Source: Monocercomonoides exilis PA203 (Eukaryota > Protista > Preaxostyla). From it: a stretch of DNA of 64,000 bases. The first letter of the stretch is position 1; every line of letters begins with the position of its first letter. Positions 4,521 through 50,011 of the stretch are shown here, piece after piece. The DNA lies in contig LSRY02000008.1 of NCBI GenBank assembly GCA_001643675.2, positions 1,798,001 through 1,862,000 on the forward strand, in the 5' to 3' direction. The position numbers and the translations under genes are program-made. The notes under the pieces were generated by a model. The model worked only from the letters and a program-made list of their open reading frames with translations, searched no databases and was not told the DNA's origin.

Positions 4521-5975
4521 GGAGGTGAAGATGGAAGCGTTTCGACATGCGAATCTCTTATCTCATCTTCAACAGCATTTCTTTCATCACCTTCCATACC
4601 CCTTGTATCCCTCTCTCACCTGTCATTTTTCAACATTTCAACAGCAAATGATGCATGCTTGCCTTCAACAACTACGTCAACCCAAACCACGTGTATGATG
4701 AACAGCTGCTCATTCTCATCAGTTTGTGACGTTTATGATAGCGGGATTGTTCATTCCCTCAACAACCCCTTGGCCTCTTTGACAGCTTCAAACACCTCAT
4801 TCATTGGATGCTGCCGGACAAGAAACGTTGTATGTGAAGGAACTTCAGATGGAAAGTTGAATCCAGGGAGGCAAAACATTACTGACAATGGACCGAATAC
4901 ATTCACTTGGTGCGAGTGGAACGGATCGAAAACAACAGGAAGCAGTGATTCATGGACGGATGGAGAATCGAGCGGAGGGGCAATCTGTGTGAATGGTTTA
5001 TCATCTGCCTCTGTGTCTGTTTCCCATTGTATATTTAATAATTGTTTTGCATACAGTCGTGGAGGGGGAATAATGTGCGCAAGCATAAAAGAAGTTAAAA
5101 TAGAGAACAACTCATTTAATGCATGCACAGCTCAGAATCATTATGGGGGTGGAATGCTTATTTATACGATTTCATCATGTGTTCTGATCAGCGATTGTGA
5201 ATTCCAGAATTGCAAAGCAAATAGCTATGGAGGTGGTCTTAATCTTAACAATTTTAATGTTTCAGGAACAGGATGCATCCCAACAGAAAATGGAGAAGGG
5301 GAGAGTGCGTGTGTGTTTGACTGCAGTTTCACTTCGTGCTCGGTTACAAATTATTACGGCGGAGGTATGTATTGTGCTGCTGTTCCAGTTGCATTCAAAA
5401 TGAGGAGCATGCAGTTTATCTCATGTTCAGCACGGCAAGAGGGCGGAGGAATGAGATTGTATCCAAACAGGCCAACAGCACCTGATGATGGAATCTATTG
5501 TTATTTCCTTTTCTTCCACGAGTGCAAATGTTATAACAACCCCTCTTACGGTCATGACGTTATGTATAATGATTACTACAGTGTCTTTTTATCTTCAGAC
5601 AATCCGTTCAAAGAATGCTACACCACAAACACAGATGACAAGAGAGTGTGCTATGCATACAATTATGCAAATGCAAGTGTTTGGTCTTATCAGCACACGG
5701 AAAAGAAGGATTGGCTGAAGGACAAGACGATATATGTTTCTGTGAATGGGAATGATACTACTCCACTTTGTGGGGCAAATACAACATATCCGTGTCTGAC
5801 AGTGAAGAAAGCGTTTGAGATGTGTGAGGTGCAGATTAGCTTGACAGTCACGCTGCTGGAAGGGAATCATGTGAGTGAGGCAACAACAGTTGAGATTGGG
5901 GAAAAGAAGATTTCAATCATTGGGACAGGCAAAGAGAAGAGTTCAATTAGAACAGGAGCGAATTTTAGCCGTTAA
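4521..5975 (+). CDS. Cassette A: Cys/Gly-rich parallel beta-helix variable domain (truncated; likely silent cassette)
   Basis: Open frame from 4521 (GGEDGSVSTCES...FFNIS) to the stop at 5975; repeated CxFxxC..GGG motifs and a CGANTTYPC cap; no signal peptide or TM. Confidence 0.8.
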   Translation, partial: GGEDGSVSTCESLISSSTAFLSSPSIPLVSLSHLSFFNISTANDACLPSTTTSTQTTCMMNSCSFSSVCDVYDSGIVHSLNNPLASLTASNTSFIGCCRTRNVVCEGTSDGKLNPGRQNITDNGPNTFTWCEWNGSKTTGSSDSWTDGESSGGAICVNGLSSASVSVSHCIFNNCFAYSRGGGIMCASIKEVKIENNSFNACTAQNHYGGGMLIYTISSCVLISDCEFQNCKANSYGGGLNLNNFNVSGTGCIPTENGEGESACVFDCSFTSCSVTNYYGGGMYCAAVPVAFKMRSMQFISCSARQEGGGMRLYPNRPTAPDDGIYCYFLFFHECKCYNNPSYGHDVMYNDYYSVFLSSDNPFKECYTTNTDDKRVCYAYNYANASVWSYQHTEKKDWLKDKTIYVSVNGNDTTPLCGANTTYPCLTVKKAFEMCEVQISLTVTLLEGNHVSEATTVEIGEKKISIIGTGKEKSSIRTGANFSR

Positions 5976-8900
5976 TCCTTCTCATCTTCTTCTGCTCATT
6001 TTATTTTCTTCATGCAATTTTTCTTCTAAAAATTGTTCCTTGGCTATTTCAATTCATTTCACTTCAACTTTAAATCTGCAAGCGTCTTATTTTCAATTTC
6101 CCTTCTCTTATTATTTTTGCCTGGCAAGATTTTGAGACAACGAAGAAGGAGGAGTAGAAAGATAGAGGTGGAGCACTTGGAGCTGCTAACTGTGAAGGTG
6201 CTGTCAAATGCTCATTTATAATCACTAACTTTTTGTAAATAATTTTTAAAATAACTTCTTCTTGGTCATCATCATCAACAACAACATCATCATCATCCAC
6301 TTCTCCTGATTCATCAGTTTTATCATCTCCTTCTATTTGTCGTTCAATACTTCTTCAATAATTACTTCTTTGCCTTCTTCGCCATTCTGATCTATTTATT
6401 GGAATCAAGTTGTTGAAGTTTTTGAATCAGGGAATCTGAGGACTGGACTTTGACTATTTTCTTTTCTTTCCTTTTGAGCAAAATGGGGAAAATGCTATTG
6501 GCATCGGGATCGCCGGCAGAGATGGAGCAGGCGGGTGTGTTAGCAAAAAGGAGCAATATTTAGAGGAGGAGGAGGAGGAGGAAAAGAAGAAGAAGAAACG
6601 ACGAATTGGAAAGAGTAAGCGAAAAAAAATTGAATAAAAAGGTTTATTGTATGTTTTGTTTTATTTTGTTTTATTTTTTTCTTGCACAAAGGTTATGCCT
6701 TGATGCTTATTTTTCTGATTTTCATATATTTCATAAATGATTTTATTTCGTTCATTTTTCTTGTATATTTGTATTGTTGTGTACTTGGAATTTTTTTACG
6801 AATGCCAATTAAAGCGATGAAAGAAAATGGATTTTTGAAAACAAGCAGAAGATTGCAACAGAAGAAAAAGGGATACGGGGAAAGCAGACGATGAAGAAGG
6901 GGCAGAAAAGATGGAAAAAGGGATGCGACCATGTTGAGGTATTTTGTGAAATTTCACCAAGAAGCATTGAGAAGAGAAGGAGGCAAAGAAAGAAGTGCTT
7001 CAGTGAGCGAACTGCATTTCTCTTTTTTCTGTATTTTTCTCTTCCAACATATTTTTTTTCAATATTTCAACAGCAAATGACGCATGTTCGTCTTCAACCA
7101 CTACGTCAACACAAATCACATGTTTGATGAATAGTTGCTTTTTCTCATCGGTCTGTGATGTGTATGATGGCGGGATTGTCCCTTCCCTCAACAATCCCTA
7201 TGCCTCTTTGTCTGTTTCAAACACCTCATTCGTTGGATGTTGCAGGGCAAGAAACGTTGAATGCATTGGAACTGCAGATAGAAAGTTGACTCCTGGGAGG
7301 CAGAACGAAACATTCAATGGAGCAAATTCATTTATTTGGTGCGAGTGGAACGGATCGAAGGCTGCTGAAATGAGCGAAGATTATTCAAAACAAGCCTCGA
7401 ATGGAGGAGCAATATTTATGTATGGCTTGACGTCTGGTTCACTTACAGTTTCGAATTGTTCATTCAACGACTGCTTGTCATATTATGGTGGAGGAGGGAT
7501 AATGTGCCACACGATCAAATCAGTGGGTATTGAAAGCAGCACTTTCAATTGTTGTGTCTCCACAAATCGATATGGAGGAGGTGTTTATTTGTATGGCATT
7601 TCTACTTGTGCTCGGGTGAGTGGATGCGAGTTCAAAAACTGTCAAGCGATTGATTATGGAGGAGGGTTAAAATTAGATAATTTTAATATTTCAGGGACAA
7701 GATGCATTTCAACAGAAAGTGGAGAAGGGGAGAGTGCGTGTGTGTTTGACTGCAGTTTCACATCATGTTCAGTTTCTGGCTCATGGGGAGGAGGTATGTA
7801 CTGTTATGGTGTTCCTAATCAATTCAAAATGAGGAGCATGCAGTTTATTTCATGTTCTGCAATGACAAGGGGAGGCGGATTTCATTTGGAGCCAGCAAAA
7901 CAAACAGCGCCAAATGAAACAATTTATTGCTATTTCCTCTTCTTCCATGAATGCAAATGCTTGGCCAATGTTCCATATGGTCACGATATGATATACTTAG
8001 ATTATTACAAAATCTTTTTGAATTCAGACAATCCTTTCTATGAATGTTACACCACAAACACAGATGACAAGAGAGTGTGCTATGCATACAATTATGCAAA
8101 TGCAAGTGTTTGGTCTTATCAGCACACGGAAAAGAAGGATTGGCTGAAGGACAAGACGATATATGTTTCTGTGAATGGGAATGATACTACTCCACTTTGT
8201 GGGGCAAATACAACATATCCGTGTCTGACAGTGAAGAAAGCGTTTGAGATGTGTGAGGTGCAGATTAGCTTGACAGTCACGCTGCTGGAAGGGAATCATG
8301 TGAGTGAGGCAACAACAGTTGAGATTGGGGAAAAGAAGATTTCAATCATTGGGACAGGCAAAGAGAAGAGTTCAATTAGAACAGGAGCGAATTTTAGCCG
8401 TTAATCCTTCTCATCTTCTTCTGCTCATTTTATTTTCTTCATGCAATTTTTCTTCTAAAAATTGTTCCTTGGCTATTTCAATTCATTTCACTTCAACTTT
8501 AAATCTGCAAGCGTCTTATTTTCAATTTCCCTTCTCTTATTATTTTTGCCTGGCAAGATTTTGAGACAACGAAGAAGGAGGAGTAGAAAGATAGAGGTGG
8601 AGCACTTGGAGCTGCTAACTGTGAAGGTGCTGTCAAATGCTCATTTATAATCACTAACTTTTTTGTAAATAATTTTTAAAATAACTTCTTCTTGGTCATC
8701 ATCATCAACAACAACATCATCATCATCCACTTCTCCTGATTCATCAGTTTTATCATCTCCTTCTATTTGTCGTTCAATACTTCTTCAATAATTACTTCTT
8801 TGCCTTCTTCGCCATTCTGATCTATTTATTGGAATCAAGTTGTTGAAGTTTTTTGAATCAGGGAATCTGAGGACTGGACTTTGACTATTTTCTTTTCTTT

Positions 8901-10519
8901 CCTTTTGAGCAAAATGGGGAAAATGCTATTGGCATCGGGATCGCCGGCAGAGATGGAGCAGGCGGGTGTGTTAGCAAAAAGGAGCAATATTTAGAGGAGG
9001 AGGAGGAGGAGGAAAAGAAGAAGAAGAAACGACGAATTGGAAAGAGTAAGCGAAAAAAAAATTGAATAAAAAGGTTTATTGTATGTTTTGTTTTATTTTG
9101 TTTTATTTTTTTCTTGCACAAAGGTTATGCCTTGATGCTTATTTTTCTGATTTTCATATATTTCATAAATGATTTTATTTCGTTCATTTTTCTTGTATAT
9201 TTGTATTGTTGTGTACTTGGAATTTTTTTACGAATGCCAATTAAAGCGATGAAAGAAAATGGATTTTTGAAAACAAGCAGAAGATTGCAACAGAAGAAAA
9301 AGGGATACGGGGAAAGCAGACGATGAAGAAGGGGCAGAAAAGATGGAAAAAGGGATGCGACCATGTTGAGGTATTTTGTGAAATTTCACCAAGAAGCATT
9401 GAGAAGAGAAGGAGGCAAAGAAAGAAGTGCTTCAGTGAGCGAACTGCATTTCTCTTTTTTCTGTATTTTTCTCTTCCAACATATTTTTTTTTCAATATTT
9501 CAACAGCAAATGACGCATGTTCGTCTTCAACCACTACGTCAACACAAATCACATGTTTGATGAATAGTTGCTTTTTCTCATCGGTCTGTGATGTGTATGA
9601 TGGCGGGATTGTCCCTTCCCTCAACAATCCCTATGCCTCTTTGTCTGTTTCAAACACCTCATTCGTTGGATGTTGCAGGGCAAGAAACGTTGAATGCATT
9701 GGAACTGCAGATAGAAAGTTGACTCCTGGGAGGCAGAACGAAACATTCAATGGAGCAAATTCATTTATTTGGTGCGAGTGGAACGGATCGAAGGCTGCTG
9801 AAATGAGCGAAGATTATTCAAAACAAGCCTCGAATGGAGGAGCAATATTTATGTATGGCTTGACGTCTGGTTCACTTACAGTTTCGAATTGTTCATTCAA
9901 CGACTGCTTGTCATATTATGGTGGAGGAGGGATAATGTGCCACACGATCAAATCAGTGGGTATTGAAAGCAGCACTTTCAATTGTTGTGTCTCCACAAAT
10001 CGATATGGAGGAGGTGTTTATTTGTATGGCATTTCTACTTGTGCTCGGGTGAGTGGATGCGAGTTCAAAAACTGTCAAGCGATTGATTATGGAGGAGGGT
10101 TAAAATTAGATAATTTTAATATTTCAGGGACAAGATGCATTTCAACAGAAAGTGGAGAAGGGGAGAGTGCGTGTGTGTTTGACTGCAGTTTCACATCATG
10201 TTCAGTTTCTGGCTCATGGGGAGGAGGTATGTACTGTTATGGTGTTCCTAATCAATTCAAAATGAGGAGCATGCAGTTTATTTCATGTTCTGCAATGACA
10301 AGGGGAGGCGGATTTCATTTGGAGCCAGCAAAACAAACAGCGCCAAATGAAACAATTTATTGCTATTTCCTCTTCTTCCATGAATGCAAATGCTTGGCCA
10401 ATGTTCCATATGGTCACGATATGATATACTTAGATTATTACAAAATCTTTTTGAATTCAGACAATCCTTTCTATGAATGTTACACCACAAACACAGATGA
10501 CAAGAGAGTGTGCTATGCA
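5619..10519 (+). repeat. Tandem direct duplication, unit ~2430 bp
   Basis: 5619-8047 is repeated at 8048-10480, differing only in homopolymer lengths as far as I can see; a 39 bp junction sequence occurs three times (5619, 8048, 10481). Confidence 0.95.
7124..8404 (+). CDS. Cassette B: chimeric beta-helix cassette (N-part = C, C-part = A)
   Basis: 426 aa ORF identical to C up to ECYTTNTDDKRVCYA and to A thereafter. Confidence 0.8.
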   Translation: MMNSCFFSSVCDVYDGGIVPSLNNPYASLSVSNTSFVGCCRARNVECIGTADRKLTPGRQNETFNGANSFIWCEWNGSKAAEMSEDYSKQASNGGAIFMYGLTSGSLTVSNCSFNDCLSYYGGGGIMCHTIKSVGIESSTFNCCVSTNRYGGGVYLYGISTCARVSGCEFKNCQAIDYGGGLKLDNFNISGTRCISTESGEGESACVFDCSFTSCSVSGSWGGGMYCYGVPNQFKMRSMQFISCSAMTRGGGFHLEPAKQTAPNETIYCYFLFFHECKCLANVPYGHDMIYLDYYKIFLNSDNPFYECYTTNTDDKRVCYAYNYANASVWSYQHTEKKDWLKDKTIYVSVNGNDTTPLCGANTTYPCLTVKKAFEMCEVQISLTVTLLEGNHVSEATTVEIGEKKISIIGTGKEKSSIRTGANFSR

Positions 10520-10975
10520 CATTATCCTTCAGATTCTTGGGTGTATGATCAAATATCAAAAAAGGATTGGTTGAAGAGAGGGATTCTCAATCGATTTGTG
10601 GCTGTGAGTGGAGGAAACGCAGAAGAGTTGTGTGGATTGGATGAGTCAAGTGCATGCAGAACCATTGGTGTTGCAGTTGAAAAGAGCGTGATCCAGGTGA
10701 GCCTGTCGGTTACACTGATGGGAGGGGATCACACAAGCGAGACAACAACGATTGATATTGGAACAAAGAAAATTTCTGTTGTTGGGACAGGCATTGAGAA
10801 AAGTACGATTGGAACAGAAGTGAATTCGTATTCTTCGCCTTCTTCGCCATCATTTACTCCTCTTAATTGTCGATTTCATTTTTTCATTCTATTTGTTCTT
10901 CTTAACAATTATTATCATCTTCCACTTCTTCCTCTTCTCAGTGGTCCTCGCCTATTTTATGAAAGCACAAGTTGA
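9323..10975 (+). CDS. Cassette C: beta-helix variable domain
   Basis: 550 aa ORF; family homology from ~9490 (FFNIS) to ~10820 (IGTE), then low-complexity read-through. Confidence 0.8.
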   Translation: MKKGQKRWKKGCDHVEVFCEISPRSIEKRRRQRKKCFSERTAFLFFLYFSLPTYFFFNISTANDACSSSTTTSTQITCLMNSCFFSSVCDVYDGGIVPSLNNPYASLSVSNTSFVGCCRARNVECIGTADRKLTPGRQNETFNGANSFIWCEWNGSKAAEMSEDYSKQASNGGAIFMYGLTSGSLTVSNCSFNDCLSYYGGGGIMCHTIKSVGIESSTFNCCVSTNRYGGGVYLYGISTCARVSGCEFKNCQAIDYGGGLKLDNFNISGTRCISTESGEGESACVFDCSFTSCSVSGSWGGGMYCYGVPNQFKMRSMQFISCSAMTRGGGFHLEPAKQTAPNETIYCYFLFFHECKCLANVPYGHDMIYLDYYKIFLNSDNPFYECYTTNTDDKRVCYAHYPSDSWVYDQISKKDWLKRGILNRFVAVSGGNAEELCGLDESSACRTIGVAVEKSVIQVSLSVTLMGGDHTSETTTIDIGTKKISVVGTGIEKSTIGTEVNSYSSPSSPSFTPLNCRFHFFILFVLLNNYYHLPLLPLLSGPRLFYESTS

Positions 10976-11645: not shown

Positions 11646-13151
11646 GTGAGAAAAGGGGAAGAGAATGAAAAGTTTGTTGTGGGAATGGGGAAGGATGTTG
11701 AGGCAGGGGCATTTGATGTGAGTGGAAGCATTGGGGTGTTGACAAACGTCACATTGAAAGGGTGGAGAAGAGGGGGAGAGATCTATTCAGGCAGGCTATT
11801 TGGAGGGAAGGGATATGGAAGGGAGAAGGGTGGAGGTGAAGAAAAAGGAGGAGAAGGAGGAGAAATAGGAAGAGGAAGAGGAAGAGAAGGAGATGGAGAA
11901 GGAGAAGGCATCAAAGGGAGTATTTCAGTGAGTGAATCACGATTCTCTTCTTTTTGCGTCTCATCAGCCCCGTTCCTATCATCCCCTTCTATTCCCCTAA
12001 TGTCCCTCTCCAAACTCACTTTTTTCAACATCTCAATAGCAAATGAGGCATGTTCACCTCCAACCACTACGTCAGCCCAAGCTACATGTTTGATGAATAG
12101 TTGCTCATTCTCATCAGTTTGTGATGTGTATGATGGCGGAATTGTTCCTTCCCTCAACAACCCCTTTGCCTCTTTGATTGCCTCAAATACCTCGTTTGTT
12201 GGATGTTGCAGAACAAGAAATGTTGTTTGCGAAGGAACATCAGACAGAAAGTTGACTCCGGGGAGACAAAATGAAACAGAAAATGGGACCAATTCGTTTA
12301 TTTGGTGCGAGTGGAACGGGTCGAAAACGACTGGAAACAAAGATGATTATACTGATGATGCTTCAAATGGTGGAGCAATTCGAATGTACAATCTCAATTC
12401 TGGAGAACTATCTGTATCTCATTGCTCATTCAATGATTGCACTGCATTCTACCATGGGGGAGCAATCATGTGCCACGCAATCAAGACGATCAAGATTGTG
12501 AGCAACGTGTTCAATTCGTGCACAGCGCATAACTTTGGCGGGGGAGGGGTGTATGCTTACCAAATAAGTTCATGTGCCCTTGTCAGTGGGTGCGACTTCC
12601 AGATGTGCAAGGCTCACCACGATGGGGGAGGGTTGAGGTTGTTCAATTTCAGTGTGCCTGGATCAGGGTGCATCGGGGAAGAAGATGGAGAAGGAGGGAG
12701 CTCGTGTGTGTTTGAGTGTAATTTCACTTCGTGCTCAACAATAAGCACATGGGGCGGAGGGCTGTATTGCAACACTGTTCCTGCTGCATTCAAAGTGAGG
12801 AGCATTCAGTTAATTTCATGTTCAGCAACAGCAAATGGAGGGGGATTGTATTTTGAATCCAGAAACACAGCAGTTCCAACCAATTATTTTTATTGTTATT
12901 TTCTGTTCTTTCATGAATGCAAGTGCTCTGCAAATACGCCATATGGTCACGATGCGATATATTATGATCAATTCAATGTTTTTTTGTCTTCTGGAAATCC
13001 GTTCAATGAATGTTACACGACAAACACTGATAATCAGAGGGTGTGCTATGTGTATTATTATTCGAGTTCAGGTTCTTGGGTTTTTGGCCAAACAACGAAA
13101 ATGGATTGGCTGAAAGACAAATTGGTTTGCATTTCAGCTTGCGGAAGCTAG
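11646..13151 (+). CDS. Cassette D: beta-helix variable domain with G/E-rich linker upstream
   Basis: 501 aa ORF with the most 5'-complete homology (VLTNVTLKG...GSISVSESRFSSFCVSSAPFL); ends just after WLKDK. Confidence 0.8.
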   Translation: MRKGEENEKFVVGMGKDVEAGAFDVSGSIGVLTNVTLKGWRRGGEIYSGRLFGGKGYGREKGGGEEKGGEGGEIGRGRGREGDGEGEGIKGSISVSESRFSSFCVSSAPFLSSPSIPLMSLSKLTFFNISIANEACSPPTTTSAQATCLMNSCSFSSVCDVYDGGIVPSLNNPFASLIASNTSFVGCCRTRNVVCEGTSDRKLTPGRQNETENGTNSFIWCEWNGSKTTGNKDDYTDDASNGGAIRMYNLNSGELSVSHCSFNDCTAFYHGGAIMCHAIKTIKIVSNVFNSCTAHNFGGGGVYAYQISSCALVSGCDFQMCKAHHDGGGLRLFNFSVPGSGCIGEEDGEGGSSCVFECNFTSCSTISTWGGGLYCNTVPAAFKVRSIQLISCSATANGGGLYFESRNTAVPTNYFYCYFLFFHECKCSANTPYGHDAIYYDQFNVFLSSGNPFNECYTTNTDNQRVCYVYYYSSSGSWVFGQTTKMDWLKDKLVCISACGS

Positions 13152-19452: not shown

Positions 19453-19879
19453 TTCTTCATCTCCATCTTCTTCATCTCCATCTTCTTCATCTCCATCTTC
19501 TTCATCTCCATCTTCTTCATCTCCATCTTCTTCATCTCCATCTTCTTCATCTCCATCTTCTTCATCTCCATCTTCTTCATCTCCATCTTCTTCATCTCCA
19601 TCTTCTTCATCTCCATCTTCTTCATCTCCATCTTCTTCATCTCCATCTTCTTCATCTCCATCTTCTTCATCTCCATCTTCTTCATCTCCATCTTCTTCAT
19701 CTCCATCTTCTTCATCTCCATCTTCTTCATCTCCATCTTCTTCATCTCCATCTTCTTCATCTCCATCTTCTTCATCTCCATCTTCTTCATCTCCATCTTC
19801 TTCATCTCCATCTTCTTCATCTCCATCTTCTTCATCTCCATCTTCTTCATCTCCATCTTCTTCATCTCCATCTTCTTCA
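19453..19879. repeat. 15-bp minisatellite (TTCTTCATCTCCATC) x ~28
   Basis: Perfect tandem array seen directly; reads (SSSSP)n on + and (EEDGD)n on -. Confidence 0.97.
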
Positions 19880-26156: not shown

Positions 26157-26213
<57 letters not shown>

Positions 26214-31586: not shown

Positions 31587-31846
31587 ATTGGGGATTATTT
31601 TTGAAATCATATTTTTTTCGGAGTATGGATGATAAAATGTATTTTTTATCACTGACATGGATAATTCATGTTAAAATGTTCTATCAATTGCAATAATCAC
31701 AAAAATGTGTGTTTTTAATGAATGAAATGAAACGAACTCTTTTAATGGTGCGATTCTTTTATGGGTTAATCTTCCAGTTTTAATAAATAAGTTTTCAAAA
31801 CAATTTTTGTGACAAAAATTTTTGACTTCAATTATAATCACTCATA
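31587..31846. mobile_element. ~260 bp MITE, degenerate (mirror 32722-32981)
   Basis: ATTGGGGATTATTTTTGAAATCATA ... TTGACTTCAATTATAATCACTCATA. Confidence 0.65.
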
Positions 31847-37765: not shown

Positions 37766-38354
37766 CAGATAAGAGGTTTCACAAGAAATTGATTAAAATT
37801 GTTGATGTTGTTGATTTTGCAGAAATGTGGAAAAAAGGAAGCTTGGGAAGGCACATAAGGGAAATTTAGGGACCTGAGAGGAATGGGGCAGAAGACACGC
37901 AAAAAGAGGATGCGTGTTATTAACTTTCAGAAATGATTCTTTTTCCTTTGCTCATTGGCCCTATTTCCCTATTTCCTTCCCAATAGCCTGCCTCGACTTT
38001 TTGTGCAATTTTACAAATATCATAATTAGCCTATATCCCTTTTCCTTCCTTTTCGACTGTTAATAAAAGAAATCTCGTAGAAAATGAATAAAAGCTCCTT
38101 TTCTCTTCAAAAATGCATAACAAAAATTCTCCCATAGAGTTATCGATCCAGCTGTGCTGTTGATGGCCATTCAGTTTCCATCTTCTGTCAATCTTCCAAA
38201 GTGTATGTTCCCTCGTCATTTTTGGAAGGCAGCCATAAAAACGTTTTTGCTAAGCACAACCGAAAAGGAAATAACAATAAAAAATTACTTGCGCACGCAC
38301 GCGCATGCATACACACACACACAAAAAATAAAATAAAATAAAATAAAATAAAAT

Positions 38355-38411
<57 letters not shown>

Positions 38412-41400
38412 TAGTTATTCCTTTGTTATCCTTCAATCTCGCCTTTTTTTGCCGAGGCATCTTTATATCCCTCGCCTCCATCTCTTTCGTCATATCTGAC
38501 AAAAATCAAAAAGGCTGAGATAATTCCTTGTTCCAATTCGCTTCTCCAAAGATCATCCTTTTGATTGCAACCTCAAAGCGTATCGCCACAGTCTTCTTTG
38601 AACTTTCCAATATTTTTGAATCTTTCTCATTAATTTCCCTTCTCTTTCTTCCTTTCCCACTTCCTCATTATTCCCCCTTTCTCTTATCCCTTCTTCTCAT
38701 TGCTCTCCCTCCAATCTTCATCTTTGTTCCATTTCTGTTTCCCTTCTCCAAATTCAAAATCCTGCAATCTCTTCCTCAGCCCATCGAAAATCATCAATGT
38801 GCCTCATTTTTCCCGCCTTCTCCTCACAAAGCATTATCAAACAAAAATACTCTTTCATTTCCTTTGCTTTGAAATTTAGCTCATTGAATTCCTTTGGATA
38901 ATGAAACATTTTGTGCTTGCTGTAAAAGAAGAAGAAGAGGAAGAAGAAGAAGAATTAATTTGCTTGAATGTCAACAGTAGTTGTGAAGGCATGAACGTGA
39001 TTTTCCGGTGGGGATTAAACAAACAAAAACTTCATTTCTATGTTTTCCTGTTCCTAATAAGGAACCGCAGAATTATCATCATTTTTTCCCTTCGCATTGC
39101 TTGATAAATTTGCAGCTGGGGGGCATTGAGATATGCCAAGTACGCAATATAAGCTGAAGAAGAAGAAGAAGAAGAAGAAGAAGAAGATGATGATGATGAT
39201 GATGATGATAATGATGATGATGATGATGATGACGACGACGACGACGACGACGATGGTATTAGTTATTCATGAAGAAAGACGGAATGTTCAGTGAAGCAGC
39301 AGAAGACGGCTGTGAAAGAGAATTTTTTGTGCTTATTTTGTGAAGCAAATTATTCAATAGAAAAAATGAAGAGGGAAGAAGAAGGAAGAAGAAGGAAGCA
39401 ATTTCAATGATATAACCTTTGCTGAAATCCATCACCATTTTCACCACAATGTCACACAAAACATTTGTCCAATCGGAATTCTCTTCTCATTCGTTTCTCT
39501 ATCTCTTGCTGATCATATCTCGCAGTTGGGTTCTTGTTTCCCTCAAACTCTTCTATCTACTTCTTCTTTCTCCTTCTCTTTCCATCTCTCACGTCCGCCA
39601 TCTCTCTGTCTCTTCCTTCACTCGCCCTCTCCATCTTTCTCCACCTCAATCGCTACACTAACCGCCGCCTCATCCATAAAATCTCTTCCAAAAAGATTCT
39701 CTCAAAAAAATAATAATAAATAAAAATTATAATAAAAATAAATCAAGTGGAAAGAATAAGAGTCTTTCTTTAAAAAAAAAAGATATTTGATGGAAAACTC
39801 ATGTTTTATCAACAGAACAAAAAAATTGTTGGAATGAATTTTGAAAAGCCAAATATGTTTTATTGAATGAAAATCAGGAAAATCATTTTAACGACTTTTT
39901 GTTTTCAATGATTCATCATGTTTACACACATCATCATCTAAAAGAATCATGCGCATGTTCTGACTATGTTTCTATAATTTTCATTTATTCAAAAACACTC
40001 AAAACTGGTTTCATCATTTATTATTCAAAATTGAAAAACTTATTATTCGAAAATTATCATTTGAGTATTTTTGAACAAAAAATTTTTTGTGAAAAATTGC
40101 TTTTGGATGAGTGTCAGAAAGCGATGAAAATATTTGACGGTCAAAATCAGATATTATCACGTCGGCTTTTGCTCAACTTTTTGTGACTTTCCAATTGTGA
40201 TTATTTGCGATGTGACTTAACACAGAAAAAAATAGTAAATATATTATTAATTAAAAAAAAATTGGGTTTATTTTTTCATTTAAGGAAATTCTTCACAATA
40301 ACTCGTTTTATTGCATTAAAAATAATTTTTTTATTATGTTATTCAGACTTATTTTTTTATCGCATTTCTGAAAATTCGAATTTTTAAAAATTTTGGATCA
40401 AAAAATCGATTTTTCTTTGAAAATTGAACACATATCAAAACCAAATGTGATTATATGGGATATTATTTTTGAAATTATAACTTTTTCGGGGTGTTCATTT
40501 TTTAAAGGTTGTTTGTCACTGGGAAGAGATTTTGTCTGCAATTTGTGAATTTTTCACAATTGTTTAATAAATAAATCTTTTTGTTCAAATAAAGATGTTG
40601 TTGTTTTTTATAGGCCTTTTCACTCTTCAGCGTTCTTTTGTTGATATTGAAGTTTTATTTTCGATTCGAAATTTTTGTATGAAATAATATGATTTCAATA
40701 ATAATCACCCATATATATATATATATATATGAGTTATTCTTTTTGAAAAATTGCATATGTTAAATATCCAGGACAAATGAGAATGTTCCTTGTTTGATCA
40801 ATTTTTGCAAAAAAATCAATCAAGATTTTCCACAATTCACATATTCTCGCTTCATATCGATTGTTTTATTCTAATTTGCAAAGTGATAAAGTCTGATGGA
40901 TTTATCACCAAAAATTATCAAAAAGGTCAAAATTTTATATAACCCTGATATTAAACATTTGCGACTTTTCAAAAAGGATAACGCACACACATTTATATTA
41001 TCTTTCATTTGTCATATATTATTGTCACACTCAGAAAGAAAAGATAAAAGATGTGATCCACGCTCAGAGAAAAGAAATGATTAAAAAAAAAGAAATACAT
41101 CCACTTAATAATTATTTCACAGAGAATTGCTAAATCAGTGTATTAATAATAATTGTCTTTTTTTAAGAACCGAAGTGTTTTTGACAACGATTTATTTCTT
41201 TGAATGACAAAACTCGTTTTTTTCGCGTTTCTTGAGTTTTGACAATTTTTCTCTTTTCTCCATCGCTTTCATCAATTTGCACGTTTTCTGATAATTACTG
41301 TTTATTGATTGCATTCCAAAAAGGCAAATCTCACAGCTCACTCATTTTATTAAAAATTAAAAAATTAATGAATGAAAAATCGAAAAATCATTAAAACGCA

Positions 41401-41768
41401 CTTAAAGCCCCAAAACAATGATTATTGTGGATCTTTTCCAAATGCTTTTTGATTCAATGAAAAATCAAAAATCCTTTTGATAAAAAAATTTTTTTTGTTT
41501 TCCTGACCATTTGTAAAGAATTGACAAAACCAAAAATCTTCTGATACAAAATCTCAAAGCAACTTCCACTCTCCTCTCGAAAATTAAAAATAGCAAAATA
41601 TATTTCGTCATCTCAAAGAACCTTTTCAGCCACTTCAATAAATCTCTCCCCAGAATATTCATCTCAAAACACTCTCCATTTCGTGTGACTCAGCTTTCAT
41701 TGTTCGCTTTATCTTTTCTTTTCATTCCCTCTCTCACCCCACGGAACACTTTCTCTTCCCCACAATCC

Positions 41769-43346
41769 TCACAATTCTGTTTCACAAAACTGCAGCCGTG
41801 TAATATTCGTGTCTTTGATCTCCACACCAACCATCGACAGTTGTGACAGCACCACCACAAACACTGACGAAGACATCACATAGCCTCCAGTTTTACTCGT
41901 TGTGATCACAACATCCTCCAATGAGAGTGACCCACCCCCATCAGACACCACAACCACACTCGGCGAAGAAAAATCTGCTGTTGAGTTGCAATCAACCTTC
42001 ATGTGCAATAAACCAAGGTGTCCTGTCGAAACACTGAATAGAATTCCTACCGATGAAAGTGCCCCTGTTCCAATCAAACTTTTATCTTTGCCTTTCCCAA
42101 TAACTGAAATCTTCTTTTCTCCAATCTCAATTGTTGTTGCCTCGCTTTGATGATTTCCTTCCATCAGTGTGACTGACAAGCTTATCTGTATTTCACACAT
42201 CTCAAACGCCTTCTTCACTGTCAGGCACGGATTTGATTCATTTGCTCCACATGACTCTAAATTGTCATTCCCATTCACTGACACATAAATCGTCTTGTCC
42301 GTCAGCCAATCTTTCTTTTCGGTGTACTGATATGACCAGCTGTTCCCAGTATAATTGTAGGCATAGCACACTCTCTTCTCCTCTGTGTTTGTGGTATAGC
42401 ATTCTTTGAACGGACTATCTGAGTTCAAATATTTACTGTAATAATCTTCATAGTATAGGTCAGCTCCATATGGCTGATCTCTTGAACAACTGCAATTGTG
42501 AAAGAAAATGAAAAAGCAATACAGTTTATCACTTGGTAATGCATCTTTCCATGGAGCAAAACACAATCCTCCACCATGAGACGCTGCCGAACATGAAATA
42601 AATTGAATGCTTCTCATTTTAAATTCCGTCGCAGGAACATTTTTACAAAACATGCCTCCGCCAAGTGTATTTGTGATTGAGCATGAAGTGAAACTGCAGT
42701 CAAACACACACGCATTCTCATCTCCTTCATTTTCTGTCCCAATGCATCCTGTTCCTGAAACCTGAAAACTTTCAAGTTTCAAACCTCCGCCTTGACTGTT
42801 TGCTTTGCAATTCTGGAATTCGCATCCACTGATCCGAGCACATGCCGAGATCGAATAAGAGTATAATCCTCCTCCATAACTGTACCGAGCGGTGCACGAA
42901 TTGAAAAAGTTATTTACCGAAATGACTGATTTAATTGTATGGCACATGACTCCACCTCCATACGCATATGCTGTGCATCCATTGAATGAGCAATGCGAAA
43001 CATAAAGTTCTCCATTTTCCAGGCTGAACATGCGAATTGCCCCGCCATTAGAAGAATCATCAGTGTGATCATTGTTTGTTCCTGTTGTTTTCGATCCATT
43101 CCATTCACACCAAGAAAATGTATTCGCTCCATTTTCTGTTTCATTCTGTCTATCTGGCTTTATAATATTGTCTGAAGTTCCTTCACATTTCACGTTTCTT
43201 GTCCGGTAGCACCCGATGAATGATGTGTTTGAGGCAGTCAGAGAGGCAAAGGGGTTGTTCAGAGAGGGGACAATCCCGCCATCATACGCATCGAAAACAG
43301 ACCAAAATGAGCAACTATTTATAAAACTTGATACTTGGGTTGACAT
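41769..43346 (-). CDS. Cassette J (mirror position to E; mosaic)
   Basis: 525 aa ORF; C-terminal ~125 aa identical to E; internal tracts match E and G. Confidence 0.8.
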   Translation of the reverse strand: MSTQVSSFINSCSFWSVFDAYDGGIVPSLNNPFASLTASNTSFIGCYRTRNVKCEGTSDNIIKPDRQNETENGANTFSWCEWNGSKTTGTNNDHTDDSSNGGAIRMFSLENGELYVSHCSFNGCTAYAYGGGVMCHTIKSVISVNNFFNSCTARYSYGGGLYSYSISACARISGCEFQNCKANSQGGGLKLESFQVSGTGCIGTENEGDENACVFDCSFTSCSITNTLGGGMFCKNVPATEFKMRSIQFISCSAASHGGGLCFAPWKDALPSDKLYCFFIFFHNCSCSRDQPYGADLYYEDYYSKYLNSDSPFKECYTTNTEEKRVCYAYNYTGNSWSYQYTEKKDWLTDKTIYVSVNGNDNLESCGANESNPCLTVKKAFEMCEIQISLSVTLMEGNHQSEATTIEIGEKKISVIGKGKDKSLIGTGALSSVGILFSVSTGHLGLLHMKVDCNSTADFSSPSVVVVSDGGGSLSLEDVVITTSKTGGYVMSSSVFVVVLSQLSMVGVEIKDTNITRLQFCETEL

Positions 43347-44459
43347 AATTGTTGAAGGTGAATAATCTGAAGATGCTGTTGAAATGTTGAAAAATGTGAG
43401 TTTGGAGAGAGAAGCAAGAGGGATTGAGGGAGATGAAATAAATAGGGCTGATGAGACACAAAAAGAAGAGAATCATGATTCACTCGCCCACGCACTCCCT
43501 TCTCTTTTAATTTTTTGACCATATACCTGTTTTGCCTCTTTGCACAACGTTGAAATATCCTCGGAAAAGTCCAACTCTCTTTTCCTATTTTTTTCCCGTC
43601 ACTTCTGATTTGCATGTTTTCCCAAAGTCTTTTTTTCTTCTCTTGCCATTTCCTGTCTTCTTTCCAAATTCAATTTTCTCGTATTTCTCTTGAACATGCA
43701 AGGGCCCTAATATCTCCGAAAAAACAGAATATATATATATATATATAATAAATAAGAAAAATAAAACATAAAAATATGAAATTGAGCATAAATGAAAATT
43801 TTTAAAAATATAAAAAATACAAAATTTGAAATGCCATACCACTTTCTTTAATCAATCTTCTTCTTCTTCTTCTTCTCATCAAAATTTCTTTTCTCTTTCT
43901 CATATTCTTCTCTGTCGTTTTCTTCAACAATTTCATTAATTTCATGCTCTCTTTTCTGTCCCTTCCCCTCCTTCTTTCCAAAATGCCCTAAAATTCTTCA
44001 AATCCCATATTTTTCATTCGTTTCATTCATTTCTCTCTGGCTCATTCCTCTATACGCATTTCAGCTGTTCCACCTTCCTATCATTTCCAGGCACACCTCA
44101 AACCCATCTTTCCTCATTCCATATGTACAAATCGGGTAGAAATACTCTTCCAAAAAGATACTAATGCTATTTAATAAAATAAAATATTATAAAATATAAT
44201 AAAATAAAAAAATAAATAAAAAATATATTTTAAAACATATTTTTAAAGCATGAAAATACAAACCAATGCCTCTTGCTATTTCTTCTCTTCACACACTTTC
44301 TCTTTCTTCTCCAAATATCGTTCATTTCTCCGAATGCGCTTATCCCTCTCGTCTTCGCTTCCCTTCAGATCGCAAAAAAAAGGAGGAAAATAATATCATT
44401 TATCAAAGCCCAGACTTCAGTTCTGGCTTTGTTAAAAATAACTATAAAAGCCAAATTCT

Positions 44460-44960
44460 TTAAAATAGACGAAGAAAAAGACGAAGAAGGAGAAAAAAGG
44501 CGGAGAAAGAGAAGGAGGAAAAGGAGGAGGAGAAAGAGGAGGAGGAGAAAGAGGAGGAGGAGGAGGAGAAGAAGAAGGCTTGGAGGAAAATAAAGAAGTG
44601 GAAGTAAATGAAGAAAAAGAAGAAGAAGAAGAAGGCGAAAATGATAATGAACAAGAAGGAATATGTATATGCATATGTATGTATTAATTTTGATTGCTGC
44701 GACAGTGCATATGAAAACAATGAAGGAGAAGAATTCGATGAAGGAAATGAAGATGATGAAGAGGATGAAGCAGATGAAGATGATGAGGAAGAAAACGAAA
44801 AGGAACAAAAGGAACAAAAGGTAGAAAAAGAAAAGGAAGAAAAGGAAGAAAAGGAAGAAAAGGAAGAAAAGGAAGAAAAGGAAGAAAAGGAACAAAAGGA
44901 ACAAAAGGAAGAAAAGGAAGAAAAGGAAGAAAATGAAAAAGAAGAAGAAGATAAAGAAGG
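44460..44960. repeat. Purine-rich low-complexity tract with a 9-bp repeat (AAGGAAGAA / AAGGAACAA)
   Basis: Seen directly; 9-mer array at ~44800-44930. Confidence 0.85.
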
Positions 44961-45599
44961 AGAATACGATAACAGCCAAGAAGAAAATATGTGTGTGTAA
45001 CTTCATTTGTTGGAGCAGCGCAAATGACAACAATTACAGCAAACATAATGAAGAATGCAATGAGGGGGAAGAAGAAGAAGAAGAAGAAGAAGGAATTGCA
45101 GCATCAATTGAATTTTTATCTTCAGAGAATCATTTCAAAACGAAATTCGTCGTTTCTCTCTTGGCATGCTCTGACACAAAGCCAAAAGCAGCAAACAGGC
45201 TGTTTCACACAGATGACAGCCAGCCAGAAATATTCTTCGTTTGACAATTGTTTCGAGAAGGAGAGACTCAGCAGCAGGACAATGCGGCTCAAATGCATTT
45301 GGCGTTTCGACTGAAGAGGAAGCAGAAAATGGAGGAGGATGAATTCATGGCGCGGGGAAAAGAAGATGAAGACAAAGAAGAAGAAGAAGAAAAATAAAAA
45401 TTAGTTGCATTCGATGAAGAAGAAATACTTGCAGAAGGTGATGAAGGCAGAGAAGAAAAGGAAGAAAAGGAAGATGAAGATAATGATAAAGAAGGAAATA
45501 AAATTATTTATGTGCTTAGGTCGTGGAAAGAAAAACATGACAAAAATGAAGAAGAAGAAGAAGAAGAAGGCTAAGCCGAAAAAGTCGAAGAGAGAAAAG

Positions 45600-47000
45600 C
45601 AGATAAAGAAAGTGAAGGTGATGAAGGTGATGAAGGTGATGAAGGTGATAATCAAAAATGAGGAGAAAAATACACATTTTCATATCATTTGTAGGTGTTT
45701 ACGAAAACATGATGGAGATGAGACAGATAAGGCTGACGAAAACAATGAGGGTGAAGAAGAAGGGGGAGAATAGACGAAAAAGTCGAAGAAGACAATGAAG
45801 ACAATGAAGAAGACGATGAAGAAAATGAAGACGATGAAGAAAATGAAGACGATGCTATCGAGAACTCAAATAACGGATATTTTCTGGTCGAAGATGGCTT
45901 CAAAAATACCTTGTTCTCTACTCTTGTGGATAACGCGTCAACGATAGAAGGCTGAAGACAAAGGTCAAACGATAAAAGTCCATTTTGCCTATCATTTTCC
46001 TCAGTTGCTTGTATTGCGCCAAATTGTCTGTATTTCTCGTATTTTCGCCTCTCAAACCAATCAGTGAATTCCAGTTCCATCTCTCTCCTCAGTCCATAAA
46101 AGCAATGTCTTTTCATTCCCACCCCAAGAAAGGCACCTTGCTCTGTCCCAACTGCCTCCAATGTCCTGCTTCAGTCATTTGCCACAATCACCCCAACAAA
46201 TTTTTTTGTAAATATCCCCGCCATCTTCAAAGGGTGTTCCCTTTTCATAGGGATTGGACATTCTTCCTTTTTGGTCTTGGACATCTTCCAACCCCGTTGA
46301 CTTCTGCTCCATCAAAATTCATTTTTCATCGTATTTCTATCCATCACGCATGTTGAGCTCATAATAAGTCACATAAATATTTGTAACAAAATACATTCAG
46401 GCTCCAATATATTTGAAAGATAGCATTTGTCTCGCTTCATTGCTGTTCTGCTCTGCAAAGAATAAATTGTCCATTTTATATAAATCGTCTGAATCACGAC
46501 TTTGGAAAGGATACAGATGATAACATCTTCACAACAAATAGAACAATATAAAATACATACATTGAAAATTCTTCATTTCCATCGAAAATATTGTTGCTTC
46601 ACGGCCATCCAGCAATCAAAATGAACAATTTCATCTTCCATCAAACAGATATCGTTTTTGTAATATCCTCCTTTTCACTGGAAATATATCATTTAGTCAA
46701 CCTGTTCTTGTTTTAGCTTCGGAATCTGACCCCGTTGGCAGTTTCTGAGCATTTGGCAAAACTTGATCATTTTCCATAACGAATAAGAGCCACAAAAGAA
46801 AAGGAGCACAACTCGATGTGTCGTTGCTGAACGGGCATATGAAGACAATGCGATAACAAAAGGATGGATTTGTGGTGTGGGGTGATGAAGTTGAGTTTTT
46901 GGAGGAAGCAGGGTTTTGAGAGGGAATGGAACGATTAAAGGATATTTTTTTGTGGAAAGAGGCATTTTTGTGATATTTCAGAGGCAAAATGGATGCGTGG
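45600..47000 (-). pseudogene. Relic X copy 2 (inverted paralog of 2180-3500)
   Basis: ORF 46697-46987(-) matches ORF 2178-2468(+) (FVMENDQVLPNAQKL.TGSDSEAKT.TG); also NPYEKGTPFEDGGDI and EKYRQFG. Confidence 0.55.
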
Positions 47001-48326
47001 GAGATGGATTGGAATGGACTTTTGCGGGGTTGTTTTTACGATTTTTGTGAGTTGGAAGGAGTGGAAGTTGTGTTTATTGTGGAGAAATGGAATTTGTTGT
47101 GTTGAAGGTGGGGCGAGGAGGGAATAGAGGGGGGGAAGATGAGTGGGGTTAATGGAATAAGCTTATTGGAGGGGAAGATTAGAGATGGAAAGGAAATGGA
47201 GAAGAAATGGAAAAGGAATATTATTTTTTTATGTATCGAGAGGAGGAGGCACATGAGGTATGACAAGAGGGAGAGTTTTTGTGGATGTATGTTTGATAAG
47301 AAAGAGAAGTGGGGTTGAAGGGGAAAAAAAAGTGAGAGATATTTTTTTAATCTTTTTTAATTTTTTATTGAAAGGACCGTTTGGCCGCGCCTCTCATTTG
47401 CAGGACAAGTGTTGGAGGCTGAGGCGGAGGAAGACGGGAAGAAGGAACATCAGCGCTGGCACTTTGCATTGGAGGTGTGGAGGCAGAGGAAGATGAGGAG
47501 CTGACTATGGGAGGTGTTTTGCAATGGAAGGAGACGGAAAAAGGATGGAGATATTTATATTTTTTTGGTTGGAAGAAGGGGAATGGGAGATGGGGAGACA
47601 GGGACTGTGATATTTGGCGTGGTGGTATTGTTGTTGTTTTGGGGGGAAATGGAGAGAAGAAGAAGACGTTTTGCGAAAAGGGATGGGAAGGGGTTATTCA
47701 GATGGAATCTTTTTCATTACCAGTTTTTTATAGAACGGAGTTTGTGGAGGTTTTTTGAGTGGAAGCAGAACTGAGGATTTGGGTTTAAGCTAATTTTTTT
47801 GAGGAAGCAGAAGGGAAGCGTTGATGGGGCAGATGGGCTTTGTTGGCAGAACGGAGAAATATTTAGAAAAGAAGAAAGAAATCTGCGAAAGGCGATCGTT
47901 GTGAAAGATATAGGTTTGCATTTTTTTTAAAATTATTTTAATTTTTTTTCACATATTATTATTTATGAAATTAGGATTTTTGCAAGAATGTTCAACGACA
48001 GTGAATGAACAAGGAATATGTCAAGAGGGGATATTGGATGCATTAAAAGAAGTCAGGATATGACAATTGCAGAACGTAGAGTGAAATGAGCTGGACGAAA
48101 TATCAAGGAAAGGAAAAGAGAAGATATATTTTTATTTGAAGGTTTTGGAAGGCATATCGGGAGAATCTTGTTAAAAGCCGAAAATGAGATCAAGGAATTG
48201 ATGATACAGCAGAAGAAGAAATTTGGCAAATGTTTGAGAAGAAGAAAAAGAAGCGGAAGTTGGAGCAGAAGATAGGGAAAAGAAAATGAGATGAAGAAGG
48301 AAAACAAGAGGAATTGGAAGAATGAA

Positions 48327-48544: not shown

Positions 48545-50011
48545 ATGAATAGGAAGAATTTTCTGAGAGAAAATCACACTTTTCCTCTTTTTTTCCAATT
48601 TTTCTCATCGCCTTCCAAACGCCTTGAATCCTTCTCCAAATTATCATTTTTCAACATTTCAACAGCAAATGATCTATGTTCACCTTCAACCACAATGTCA
48701 ACCCAAACAAATTGTATGATGAGTAGCTGCTCATTTTGGTCTGTTTGTGATACGTATGATGGCGGAATTGTTCATTCCCTCAACAATCCCTATGCCTCTT
48801 TAACTGCCTCAAATACCTCGTTTGTTGGATGTTATCGGACAAGAAATGTTGAATGCAGTGGAACAGCAGAGGTTCCTTTGAAGCCAGACAGACAGAACGA
48901 AACATTCAATGGAGCTAATTCATTCACTTGGTGCGAATGGAATGGATCGAAAACATCAGGAGAAAGTGAGTCTGTTACAGATGGAGTATCAAGCGGAGGA
49001 GCAATTTGCATGTTCAGTCAGTCATCCGCCTCTGTTTCCGTTTCTCACTGCACTTTCAACGACTGCTATGCGTATTATGATGGAGGAGCTATCATGTGCT
49101 ATAATATAAAATCTGTGAAAATTGAAAACAACTATTTCAATTCATGTTCAGCTCAAGTGAATGTTGGGGGAGCCATGTGCATCGTCACGATTTCATCGTG
49201 TATTCGGATCAGTGGATGTGAATTCCAGAATTGTAAAGCGGCTTATAATGGAGGAGGGCTTTATCTTGAAAATTTTCAGGTTTCAGGAGCTGATTGCATT
49301 GGAACAGAAAGTGGAGGAGGAGAGAGTGCGTGTGTGTTTGACTGCAGTTTCACTTCATGTTCTGTGACAAATTATTATGGTGGAGGTATGCGTTGTTACA
49401 ATGTTCCTAATCAATTCAAAATGAGGAGCATTCAATTTATCTCATGCTCAGCACGGCAAGAGGGCGGAGGATTATTATTGCAGCCAAATCGAGAAACAAC
49501 ACAAAATGATGGGTTCTATTGTTATTTTTTGTTCTTCCATGAATGCAGCTGCAGGGATGCAGCCAATCCACGTGGGCATGACGTTGAGTACGTCGATACG
49601 TACAATCTGTATTTGGAATCAGGAAATCCATTTTATGAATGTTACACCACAAACACAAACGATAAGAGGATCTGCTTTGCATACAATTATGCAAATGCAA
49701 GCGCTTGGTCATATGATCAAACATCAAAAAAGGATTGGCTGAAGAGAGGGATTCTCAACCGATTTGTGGCAGTGAGCGGTGGTGGTGAAGATGATCTGTG
49801 TGGACTGGATGAGTCAAGTGCATGCCGAACCATTGGTGTTGCAGTTGATAAGAGCAAGATCCAGGTGAGTCTGTCTGTTACGCTGATGGAAGGGAATCAC
49901 ACAAGCGAGACAACAACTATTGCGATTGGGGAAAAGAAGATTTCTGTTATTGGAACAGGAAAGGATTCATCATCTTTGGAAATATCGGACTCGCAATGGC
50001 AACATCATTGA
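48545..50011 (+). CDS. Cassette K: highly mosaic
   Basis: 488 aa ORF; tracts matching G, F, A, E and C. Confidence 0.8.
   Translation: MNRKNFLRENHTFPLFFQFFSSPSKRLESFSKLSFFNISTANDLCSPSTTMSTQTNCMMSSCSFWSVCDTYDGGIVHSLNNPYASLTASNTSFVGCYRTRNVECSGTAEVPLKPDRQNETFNGANSFTWCEWNGSKTSGESESVTDGVSSGGAICMFSQSSASVSVSHCTFNDCYAYYDGGAIMCYNIKSVKIENNYFNSCSAQVNVGGAMCIVTISSCIRISGCEFQNCKAAYNGGGLYLENFQVSGADCIGTESGGGESACVFDCSFTSCSVTNYYGGGMRCYNVPNQFKMRSIQFISCSARQEGGGLLLQPNRETTQNDGFYCYFLFFHECSCRDAANPRGHDVEYVDTYNLYLESGNPFYECYTTNTNDKRICFAYNYANASAWSYDQTSKKDWLKRGILNRFVAVSGGGEDDLCGLDESSACRTIGVAVDKSKIQVSLSVTLMEGNHTSETTTIAIGEKKISVIGTGKDSSSLEISDSQWQHH

Follow-up and report, generated by a model that had tools for sequence, protein, structure and literature searches.

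What could be encoded by a series of open reading frames that share an almost invariant framework but differ at the residues placed directly before each of a succession of Gly-Gly-Gly turns? This question is raised by a 64,000-nucleotide stretch of Monocercomonoides exilis PA203 DNA (contig LSRY02000008.1, positions 1,798,001 to 1,862,000 of the forward strand), which is referred to here as the window and lies on contig C80. Using tblastn with one open frame as the query, we find in the window 11 copies of a ~430 amino acid (aa) domain, here called the head, between 4.5 and 50 kb, together with a fragment at the left edge. The copies are 60–77% identical at the protein level. A preliminary description of this DNA, made from the letters alone, had compared the variable residues to the complementarity-determining regions (CDRs) of antibodies and had suggested a receptor repertoire.

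We think it probable that the region is an array of truncated membrane-distal heads of a giant type-I surface protein family, and that their hypervariable ridge is most likely a germline-encoded ligand-binding surface that provides a repertoire of specificities. Probable ligands would be glycans or other surface polymers, either bacterial or from host mucus. The ridge would differ between paralogues through substitution and segmental gene conversion, and the paralogues together could serve the cell as receptors or adhesins of many specificities, with the copies in the window acting as a reservoir of head variants or representing by-products of segmental duplication that are kept readable by constant exchange. 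What is newly added here is a map of the variation at the level of the individual rung, the composition of the loops, their fixed length and an estimate of selection.

Variation across the head domain

Heads from the window and from other loci of the genome were aligned (36 sequences), and two larger sets were used alongside, namely 143 non-redundant heads, annotated proteins included, and, separately, 102 heads from proteins of at least 1,600 aa. The head consists of six rungs of the form [C/N]xFxxCxA-xxx-GGGhxhx, with one GGAI and five GGG[ILMV] turns, and positions were numbered from the first G of each GGG. The framework motifs that had been described as near-invariant (WCEWNGS, GGAI, CEFQNCKA, ESACVFDCSF, FKMRS.QFISC and YCYFLFFHEC) were all found in the translations of the open reading frames, as were the quoted loop variants (YSR/YYG/FYH/HWC/YWD/FFD/YYD/YAY and the others).

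Entropy along the head is periodic, being 2.2–3.4 bits at positions −3 to −1 of the five GGG turns and at +4/+6/+7, 0–0.4 bits at GGG and ~1.1–1.4 bits elsewhere. Specifically, in the 143 heads it was 2.40/2.23/2.80 bits at −3/−2/−1, 0.04/0.00/0.21 bits at GGG and 2.44/2.59/2.01 bits at +4/+6/+7. The 15 pre-GGG positions of this set averaged 2.69 bits, against 1.14 bits for the rest of the core, a mean that 100,000 random draws of 15 positions never attained, and the pattern recurs in the 102 heads of long proteins (3.02 versus 1.36 bits). The placing of variation just before GGG is therefore right as far as the strong peak at these positions is concerned, but variation is not confined there, as the alternating outward residues after GGG vary equally. 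Each loop has between 42 and 72 distinct triplets among the 143 heads, a loop length of 3 residues is kept by at least 97% of 256 heads, and the spacing of the rungs is invariant (29/28/28/43/28). The GGAI rung is preceded by a longer, variable acidic loop.

Predicted scaffold of the head

An AlphaFold2 model based on the alignment of 36 heads has a pLDDT of ~90 over residues 50–325, rungs of 28–29 residues, and a strand pattern that is regular and in phase in every rung. Using VIA-align, this model matched AlgG/alginate epimerases, tailspikes, NosD, pectate lyases, autotransporter passengers and the adhesin PfbA with Z of 15–18 (root-mean-square deviation 3–4 Å over 210–263 residues, sequence identity 7–14%), and among the predicted structures of the ESM Atlas those closest to it carry Chlam_PMP, Beta_helix or NosD (TM 0.5–0.63). 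Foldseek found no match to the model in the PDB at E ≤ 0.001, a PDB sequence search with a head profile returned nothing meaningful, and a Pfam scan of two heads gave no family at E ≤ 1. The model and the VIA-align matches suggest that the scaffold of the head is a right-handed parallel β-helix with a pectate-lyase-like fold, consistent with the constant β-helix scaffold that had been proposed.

Since the variable triplets occupy the same position of each rung and the spacing is invariant, they must run in a line along the helix axis, and the stacking of the loops along the solenoid that had been anticipated agrees with the predicted structure. The alternation of h-x-h-x after GGG means that +4 and +6 would point outward. 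Periodicity and alternation together suggest that the pre-GGG and +4/+6/+7 positions form a continuous ridge around the GGG corner, exposed on one face.

Loop composition and selection

The enrichment of Tyr, Trp, His, Asn and Ser that was noted originally is borne out in the 143 heads, where, compared to the rest of the core, Tyr is enriched 3.8-fold, Trp 3.6-fold, His 3.1-fold, Asn 2.0-fold and Ser 1.4-fold at the pre-GGG loops; Arg is also enriched, 2.2-fold, and Pro is absent. When the expectation was taken from the base composition of the spacers of the window, Tyr was observed at 19.5% against 6.2% expected and Pro at 0 against 2.9% (chi-square 1881), with Asn at 15.8% and Ser at 14.4% of pre-GGG positions, while Lys, Ile, Leu and Phe were 3–6 fold below expectation. 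Tyr also makes up as much as 30% of residues at +4/+6. This composition is unlike that of drift under A+T-rich mutation bias. It is strongly non-neutral and paratope-like, and resembles that of protein- or glycan-binding surfaces, as had been claimed.

Selection was estimated on 39 sequences by pairwise Nei-Gojobori counts of nonsynonymous and synonymous differences (pN/pS) and by a maximum likelihood (ML) omega for each class of site. Across the family pN/pS was 0.72–0.80 for the loops and 0.35–0.36 for the framework. In phylogenetically independent closest pairs the loop value was 1.51 (bootstrap confidence interval (CI) 0.93–3.31; 5 pairs) or 1.05 (CI 0.83–1.35; 13 pairs), with 0.34–0.37 for the framework and 0.01 for GGG, and the contrast of nonsynonymous to synonymous changes between loops and framework has an odds ratio of 4.75 (p = 1.5e-5). 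The rate of loop evolution is therefore 3–4 times that of the framework and is near neutral or higher. The preliminary description had named a loop dN/dS no higher than that of the framework as part of the result that would speak against it, and the opposite was observed.

Full-length relatives of the head

The head is found in two genomic settings, as part of long open frames and as clustered short open frames. The first comprises single open frames of 2,700–3,100 aa dispersed over many contigs, and at least 124 annotated proteins of 1,600–4,300 aa contain the head. The heads of the window are homologous over their whole length, at 60–77% identity, to those of open frames of 2,900–3,100 aa. 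In the full-length order a signal peptide is followed by ~250 variable residues, the head (residues ~225–700) and ~1,800 residues of further β-helix modules, after which a single membrane span leads into a cytoplasmic tail.

The kinase family PF07714 is matched by about two thirds of the 124 long relatives, a few of which are annotated as ‘putative protein tyrosine and serine/threonine kinase’. In a Pfam scan of 16 tails the match to the kinase profile was restricted to positions ~157–258, and in four tails that were read no HRD and DFG motifs were visible upstream of the W.APE motif. The tail thus appears to be a C-lobe remnant of a TKL-type kinase, falling short of a complete catalytic domain. 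The signal peptide, the membrane span and the kinase-homology tail make the full-length relatives receptor-like. One divergent member of the family, with a head that is 53% identical, lies at the right end of the window (56208–64000) and has its membrane span and a charged tail of ~290 residues, rich in Lys, Glu and Arg (56208–57100), inside it. Unlike most full-length relatives, it gives no match to the kinase profile.

The kinase remnant ties the head family to what has been reported as the ‘largest gene family, tyrosine kinases’ of M. exilis (Karnkowska et al., 2019; PMC6759080), and to the ‘unclassified repeats’, overlapping with kinases, that account for 35% of its assembly (Treitli et al., 2021; PMC8767320). 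We found no description of the ectodomain of this giant family in the literature, and none in either of these two papers. No complete head was found outside M. exilis. Another oxymonad, Streblomastix strix, has giant proteins with 39–50 rungs of the F..C....GGGh type at a spacing of 28–31 residues, which suggests that the rung is older than the M. exilis head.

The truncated copies in the window

The second setting consists of open frames of 400–820 aa clustered on contigs C80, C53 and C71, often as mirror pairs, and the copies in the window belong here. By tblastn they are found at 4566, 7070, 9464, 11958, 21107, 26698, 29310 and 48599 on the + strand and at 35258, 37870 and 43442 on the − strand, where the fragment at 2–217 also lies. 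Four cassettes form a 2.45-kb tandem run (4.5–13.2 kb) and four more are mirror pairs within a palindrome, and the DNA between copies is low-complexity, A+T-rich and free of credible genes. The features are as follows.

2–217, − strand: left-edge fragment with just the beginning of the domain (matches residues 224–295 of a full-length protein by tblastn; open reading frame 2–427 on the − strand)
4539–5975, + strand: truncated head cassette, unit 1 of the 2.45-kb tandem array, corresponding to full-length residues ~224–698; 354-nt identical tract with the next unit
7070–8404, + strand: truncated head cassette, tandem unit 2; 975 nt identical to unit 3, divergent beyond
9323–10975, + strand: truncated head cassette, tandem unit 3, chimeric with unit 2 (tblastn, open reading frame translation, shared tract)
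11646–13151, + strand: truncated head cassette, tandem unit 4; extends further upstream, early end at domain residue ~396
21107–22795, + strand: reference head cassette, a 562-aa open frame corresponding to full-length residues 236–796; structure model made
21596–21604, 21680–21688, 21764–21772, 21893–21901 and 21977–21985, + strand: hypervariable triplets of the reference cassette
22417–32210, + strand: left arm of the palindrome, 9.8 kb, with two cassettes
26698–28032, + strand: head cassette of the left arm, loop 2 = YWD
27158–27171, + strand: substitution cluster between the arms in hypervariable loop 2, 5 changes in 14 bp; counterpart 37397–37410
29310–30781, + strand: head cassette of the left arm; its frame is split at 30117, where a T5/T6 run differs by 1 base
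32358–42147, − strand: right arm of the palindrome
33786–35258, − strand: head cassette of the right arm, intact partner of 29310–30781
36536–37870, − strand: head cassette of the right arm, loop 2 = FFD
41769–43442, − strand: head cassette across the outer boundary of the palindrome; 176-nt identical tract with the cassette at 21107
48545–50011, + strand: head cassette; 245-nt identical tract with the cassette at 33786–35258
56208–64000, − strand: divergent full-length family member of ~4,200–4,300 aa; signal peptide and head beyond the end of the window

The cassettes span only full-length residues ~224–800. None of the 11 has a signal peptide or a membrane span, so the window copies cannot themselves be surface receptors. 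The idea of a receptor repertoire consequently finds its footing in the architecture of the full-length relatives, but it does not apply directly to the truncated copies at 4900–49600 for which it was put forward. In most cassettes the first in-frame ATG is that of a conserved Met at the start of the domain. For this reason, and as no signal peptide precedes that Met, we regard it as unlikely that the cassettes encode standalone secreted short proteins.

The truncated copies nevertheless appear well preserved, in that 97 of the 98 head matches scored across the genome are free of stops while copies differ by 25–30% at the DNA level, and dN/dS in the framework is 0.23 between pairs of truncated heads and 0.22 between pairs of full-length ones. 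In a tree of heads, short and full-length sequences are interspersed, and labels change 48 times, compared with 75.6 ± 4.2 times after shuffling. About half of the sampled words of 20500–23500 are present in four RNA runs of one study, which fits transcription of the cassette in this stretch, though carry-over of DNA may be the source. Looking up the exact protein products of two cassettes in public assemblies gave no match.

Exchange between copies and the palindrome

Tracts of 120–975 nt are identical in pairs of cassettes that are 72–90% identical overall, showing recent gene conversion or unequal crossing-over. As a result of this exchange, part of the apparently purifying signal in the cassettes may be imported and not acting at these loci. 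This bears on the possibility that the window copies are dead debris of segmental duplication, in which the loop pattern is merely inherited from functional ancestors and is uninformative on these loci. The missing signal peptides and membrane spans, the low-complexity spacers, the one frameshifted copy, and the fact that the divergence of close pairs was largely imported by conversion tracts and not by new mutation could all be accounted for in this way. Yet ~99% of scored heads are free of stops in spite of their DNA divergence, the framework dN/dS of truncated copies equals that of full-length genes, and the presence in RNA runs of around half of the words sampled from one cassette stretch is a further difficulty, as is the nature of the sole frameshift, a difference in a homopolymer (T5/T6) for which an error of sequencing may be responsible. 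We see the debris explanation as having perhaps a quarter share of the case, that is, as fairly unlikely.

Over 9.8 kb, the two arms of the palindrome differ by five single-base homopolymer indels, one change in a simple repeat, two bases adjoining the centre (32182–32183) and one cluster of five substitutions. The indels, at 24078, 28243, 28711, 30117 and 31032 (and the mirror positions), lie in A or T runs of 5–7 bases, and that at 30117 is the only one to cause a frameshift in a cassette (29310–30781). The cluster changes TAT TGG GAT GGA GGA (27158–27171) to TTC TTT GAT GGA GGG (37397–37410), that is, YWD to FFD with a synonymous GGA>GGG, and falls exactly in a hypervariable loop; we estimate the chance that a patch placed at random would hit one of the ten loops per arm at ~2%. 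The FFD version also occurs in a pair of paralogues that are 76% identical (C71:54202–57222 and 70085–73105) and that share an identical stretch of ~95 bp with both arms, directly downstream of loop 2 (27150–27290 of the window). The 21-mer with YWD is unique in the assembly, and heads bearing YWD exist elsewhere.

The simplest reading of the loop 2 patch, which is a single event, would be short-tract gene conversion, and the ~95-bp stretch shared with the C71 pair would be an older conversion tract adjoining it. On the other hand, the patch may be an artefact of short-read polishing between paralogues, in which case the ~100-bp identity between the arms and the C71 paralogue would be its cause. 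A mutator of the diversity-generating retroelement type was also considered and is unsupported, since the open frames of the spacers are low-complexity, no reverse transcriptase was seen in them by eye (no Pfam scan was made) and Trp (TGG) is frequent in the loops.

Truncated, recombining copies are also what would be expected if the proteins formed a variant surface coat for evasion of host immunity (antigenic variation), with the truncated copies as silent donor cassettes. The copies are domain-only and in frame, have no start or signal peptide, are arranged in arrays and palindromes, and are mosaic, and the one patch of five substitutions between otherwise identical arms lies in a hypervariable loop. 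However, the full-length genes, of which there are more than 100, lie scattered on many contigs and are not gathered at one expression site, the conserved cytoplasmic kinase-homology tail suggests signalling or scaffolding, no full-length head in the assembly copies a sampled cassette, and M. exilis is regarded as a gut commensal (PMC8767320, PMC6759080). We therefore consider a variant coat to be improbable.

Weighing the ligand-binding reading

Several observations count against a ligand-binding ridge supplied from a reservoir of heads. Firstly, synonymous sites are saturated at the divergence of the family as a whole (pS 0.53–0.72), which compresses the family-wide pN/pS, and the per-class ML codon model gives an omega of 0.64 for the loops (classes 0.64, 0.52 and 0.25) at tree lengths of ~49 substitutions per codon. 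A loop dN/dS above 1 is not established, as both CIs from closest pairs include 1. Secondly, other outward positions of the helix are moderately variable too (1.3–1.9 bits), so that the focus of variation on one corner is a matter of degree, and in nine full-length paralogues the variability of the head exceeds that of parts of the stalk by only a small margin. Finally, a comparison at the protein level of 22 truncated heads with the 102 full-length heads revealed no long identical tract; the longest common peptide is 39 aa and the best identities are 67–76%, with only a small share of the cassettes sampled. The role of a reservoir is thus without direct support from shared tracts in the sampled heads.

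These points are in part those that would be predicted if the pre-GGG turns and the outward residues were simply the least constrained sites of a structural or coat protein, drifting under relaxed constraint and with no ligand-specific repertoire. A loop pN/pS that is statistically indistinguishable from 1, the low loop omega of the ML model and the variation at other exposed positions are all compatible with this. Drift should, however, take residues near their mutation-driven frequencies, whereas Pro is at 0%, Lys, Ile, Leu and Phe are 3–6 times below and Tyr is 3–5 times above them; moreover, loop length is strictly conserved and the same bias is present in the 102 full-length heads. On balance we judge relaxed constraint alone to be unlikely, and favour a ridge that binds ligands.

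All the diversity seen lies between germline paralogues of one assembly, and nothing indicates somatic diversification. The term ‘CDR-like’ is accordingly apt only as an analogy for hypervariable positions on a constant scaffold, since the variants are passed on through the germline and the loops have a fixed length of 3 residues. Solenoid receptors with a variable face, such as the variable lymphocyte receptors (VLRs) of lampreys or leucine-rich repeat (LRR) receptor kinases, offer a better comparison.

If the ridge is a binding site, M. exilis would have hundreds of germline-encoded specificities on a scaffold that would be new for a diversified receptor repertoire in eukaryotes, and it would provide a tractable route to how a bacterivorous gut commensal recognises its prey or the surfaces of its host. 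A fixed-length ridge rich in Tyr, Ser and Asn on a rigid repeat protein would also be a natural counterpart of engineered binder scaffolds. A more far-reaching and tentative idea, which we think is fairly unlikely to hold in full and put on a level with the debris explanation, is one of inherited combinatorial recognition, in which several hundred giant receptors carry the Tyr-rich ridge and megabase arrays of head-only copies act as a conversion reservoir. By reshuffling loops, and also patches of loop size, this reservoir would create new specificities for surface polymers of bacteria or of the host. A free-standing protist that lacks mitochondria would thereby have, on a solenoid, an analogue of the logic of VLRs or VSGs.

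Comparison with known systems

The M. exilis heads share with lamprey VLRs and antibody CDRs a constant scaffold with hypervariable positions rich in Tyr, Ser and Asn, and with VLRs the cassette-like partial copies near complete genes and, according to the model, the stacking of hypervariable positions on one face of a solenoid. They differ from both in that diversity lies between germline paralogues, loop length is fixed, and there is no sign of somatic assembly or of an incomplete germline gene awaiting it.

Large families in which a variable ectodomain of cysteine-rich or solenoid repeats is joined by a single membrane span to a kinase or pseudokinase tail are known from the transmembrane kinases (TMKs) of Entamoeba histolytica and the LRR receptor kinases of plants, and in LRR receptors it is the solvent-exposed positions of the repeats that vary. 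The M. exilis proteins differ in having a predicted β-helix as the ectodomain in place of CXXC or LRR repeats, a tail with the C-lobe only, and a length of 3,000–4,300 aa, and we know of no counterpart of the head-only copy arrays in the TMK or LRR receptor kinase families.

Promoterless or truncated but readable copies of a variable part, held in arrays and made mosaic by gene conversion, are a further likeness to silent-cassette systems (trypanosome VSG arrays, Borrelia vls, Neisseria pilS) and Giardia VSPs. The window copies are partial, readable, not expressible on their own and recombining, as seen from their truncation, the 97 of 98 stop-free matches and the identical tracts of 120–975 nt. 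Unlike those systems, there is no single expression site, more than 100 genes are complete, and no transfer from a cassette to a complete gene was detected in the sampled heads.

At the level of the fold, phage tailspikes and the polysaccharide lyases and epimerases with the pectate-lyase fold are the best matches of the head model among solved structures, and these bind polysaccharides along one face of the helix. The likeness is restricted to the fold, with 7–14% identity, and no catalytic motif was identified in the heads.

Paralogous surface families of right-handed β-helix coils, each coil with a GGA(I/L/V)-type turn and an F-x-x motif, are also represented by the chlamydial Pmp (PF02415) and the Pmp-like surface proteins of Trichomonas, both of which act as adhesins (PMC11166332, PMC10715098, PMC6701047). 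In contrast to these, the two heads scanned do not match Pfam Chlam_PMP even at E ≤ 1, the head motif is FxxC...GGG[ILM] with a conserved pattern of cysteines and FxxC in place of FxxN, and the M. exilis family is orders of magnitude larger. Furthermore, whereas Pmp are autotransporters, the full-length relatives are eukaryotic type-I membrane proteins, in which the C-terminal end is formed by a single membrane helix and a cytoplasmic tail that appears to be a kinase remnant, with no C-terminal β-barrel.

Other features of the window

Inverted duplicates of the tandem units, with 97% identity, lie 10–14 kb before the start of the window (C80:1784224–1787674) and have the same E-values as the unit at 4683 of the window, suggesting that the tandem run is itself one arm of another palindrome. 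A non-coding element of 2.6 kb is present as an inverted pair (933–3510 and 45623–48248, 80.7% identity), each member being upstream of a head cassette, and shorter relatives of it are found at 28.3–28.8 and 35.7–36.2 kb. Between cassettes, at 19453–19897, there is a near-perfect 15-bp tandem repeat, TTCTTCATCTCCATC (29.7 copies, 98% matches), which gives rise to long spurious open frames on both strands. The block at 44200–45400 is of low complexity and has a strong strand asymmetry (AT skew 0.36), with open frames that are rich in Lys/Glu or in Phe/Leu.

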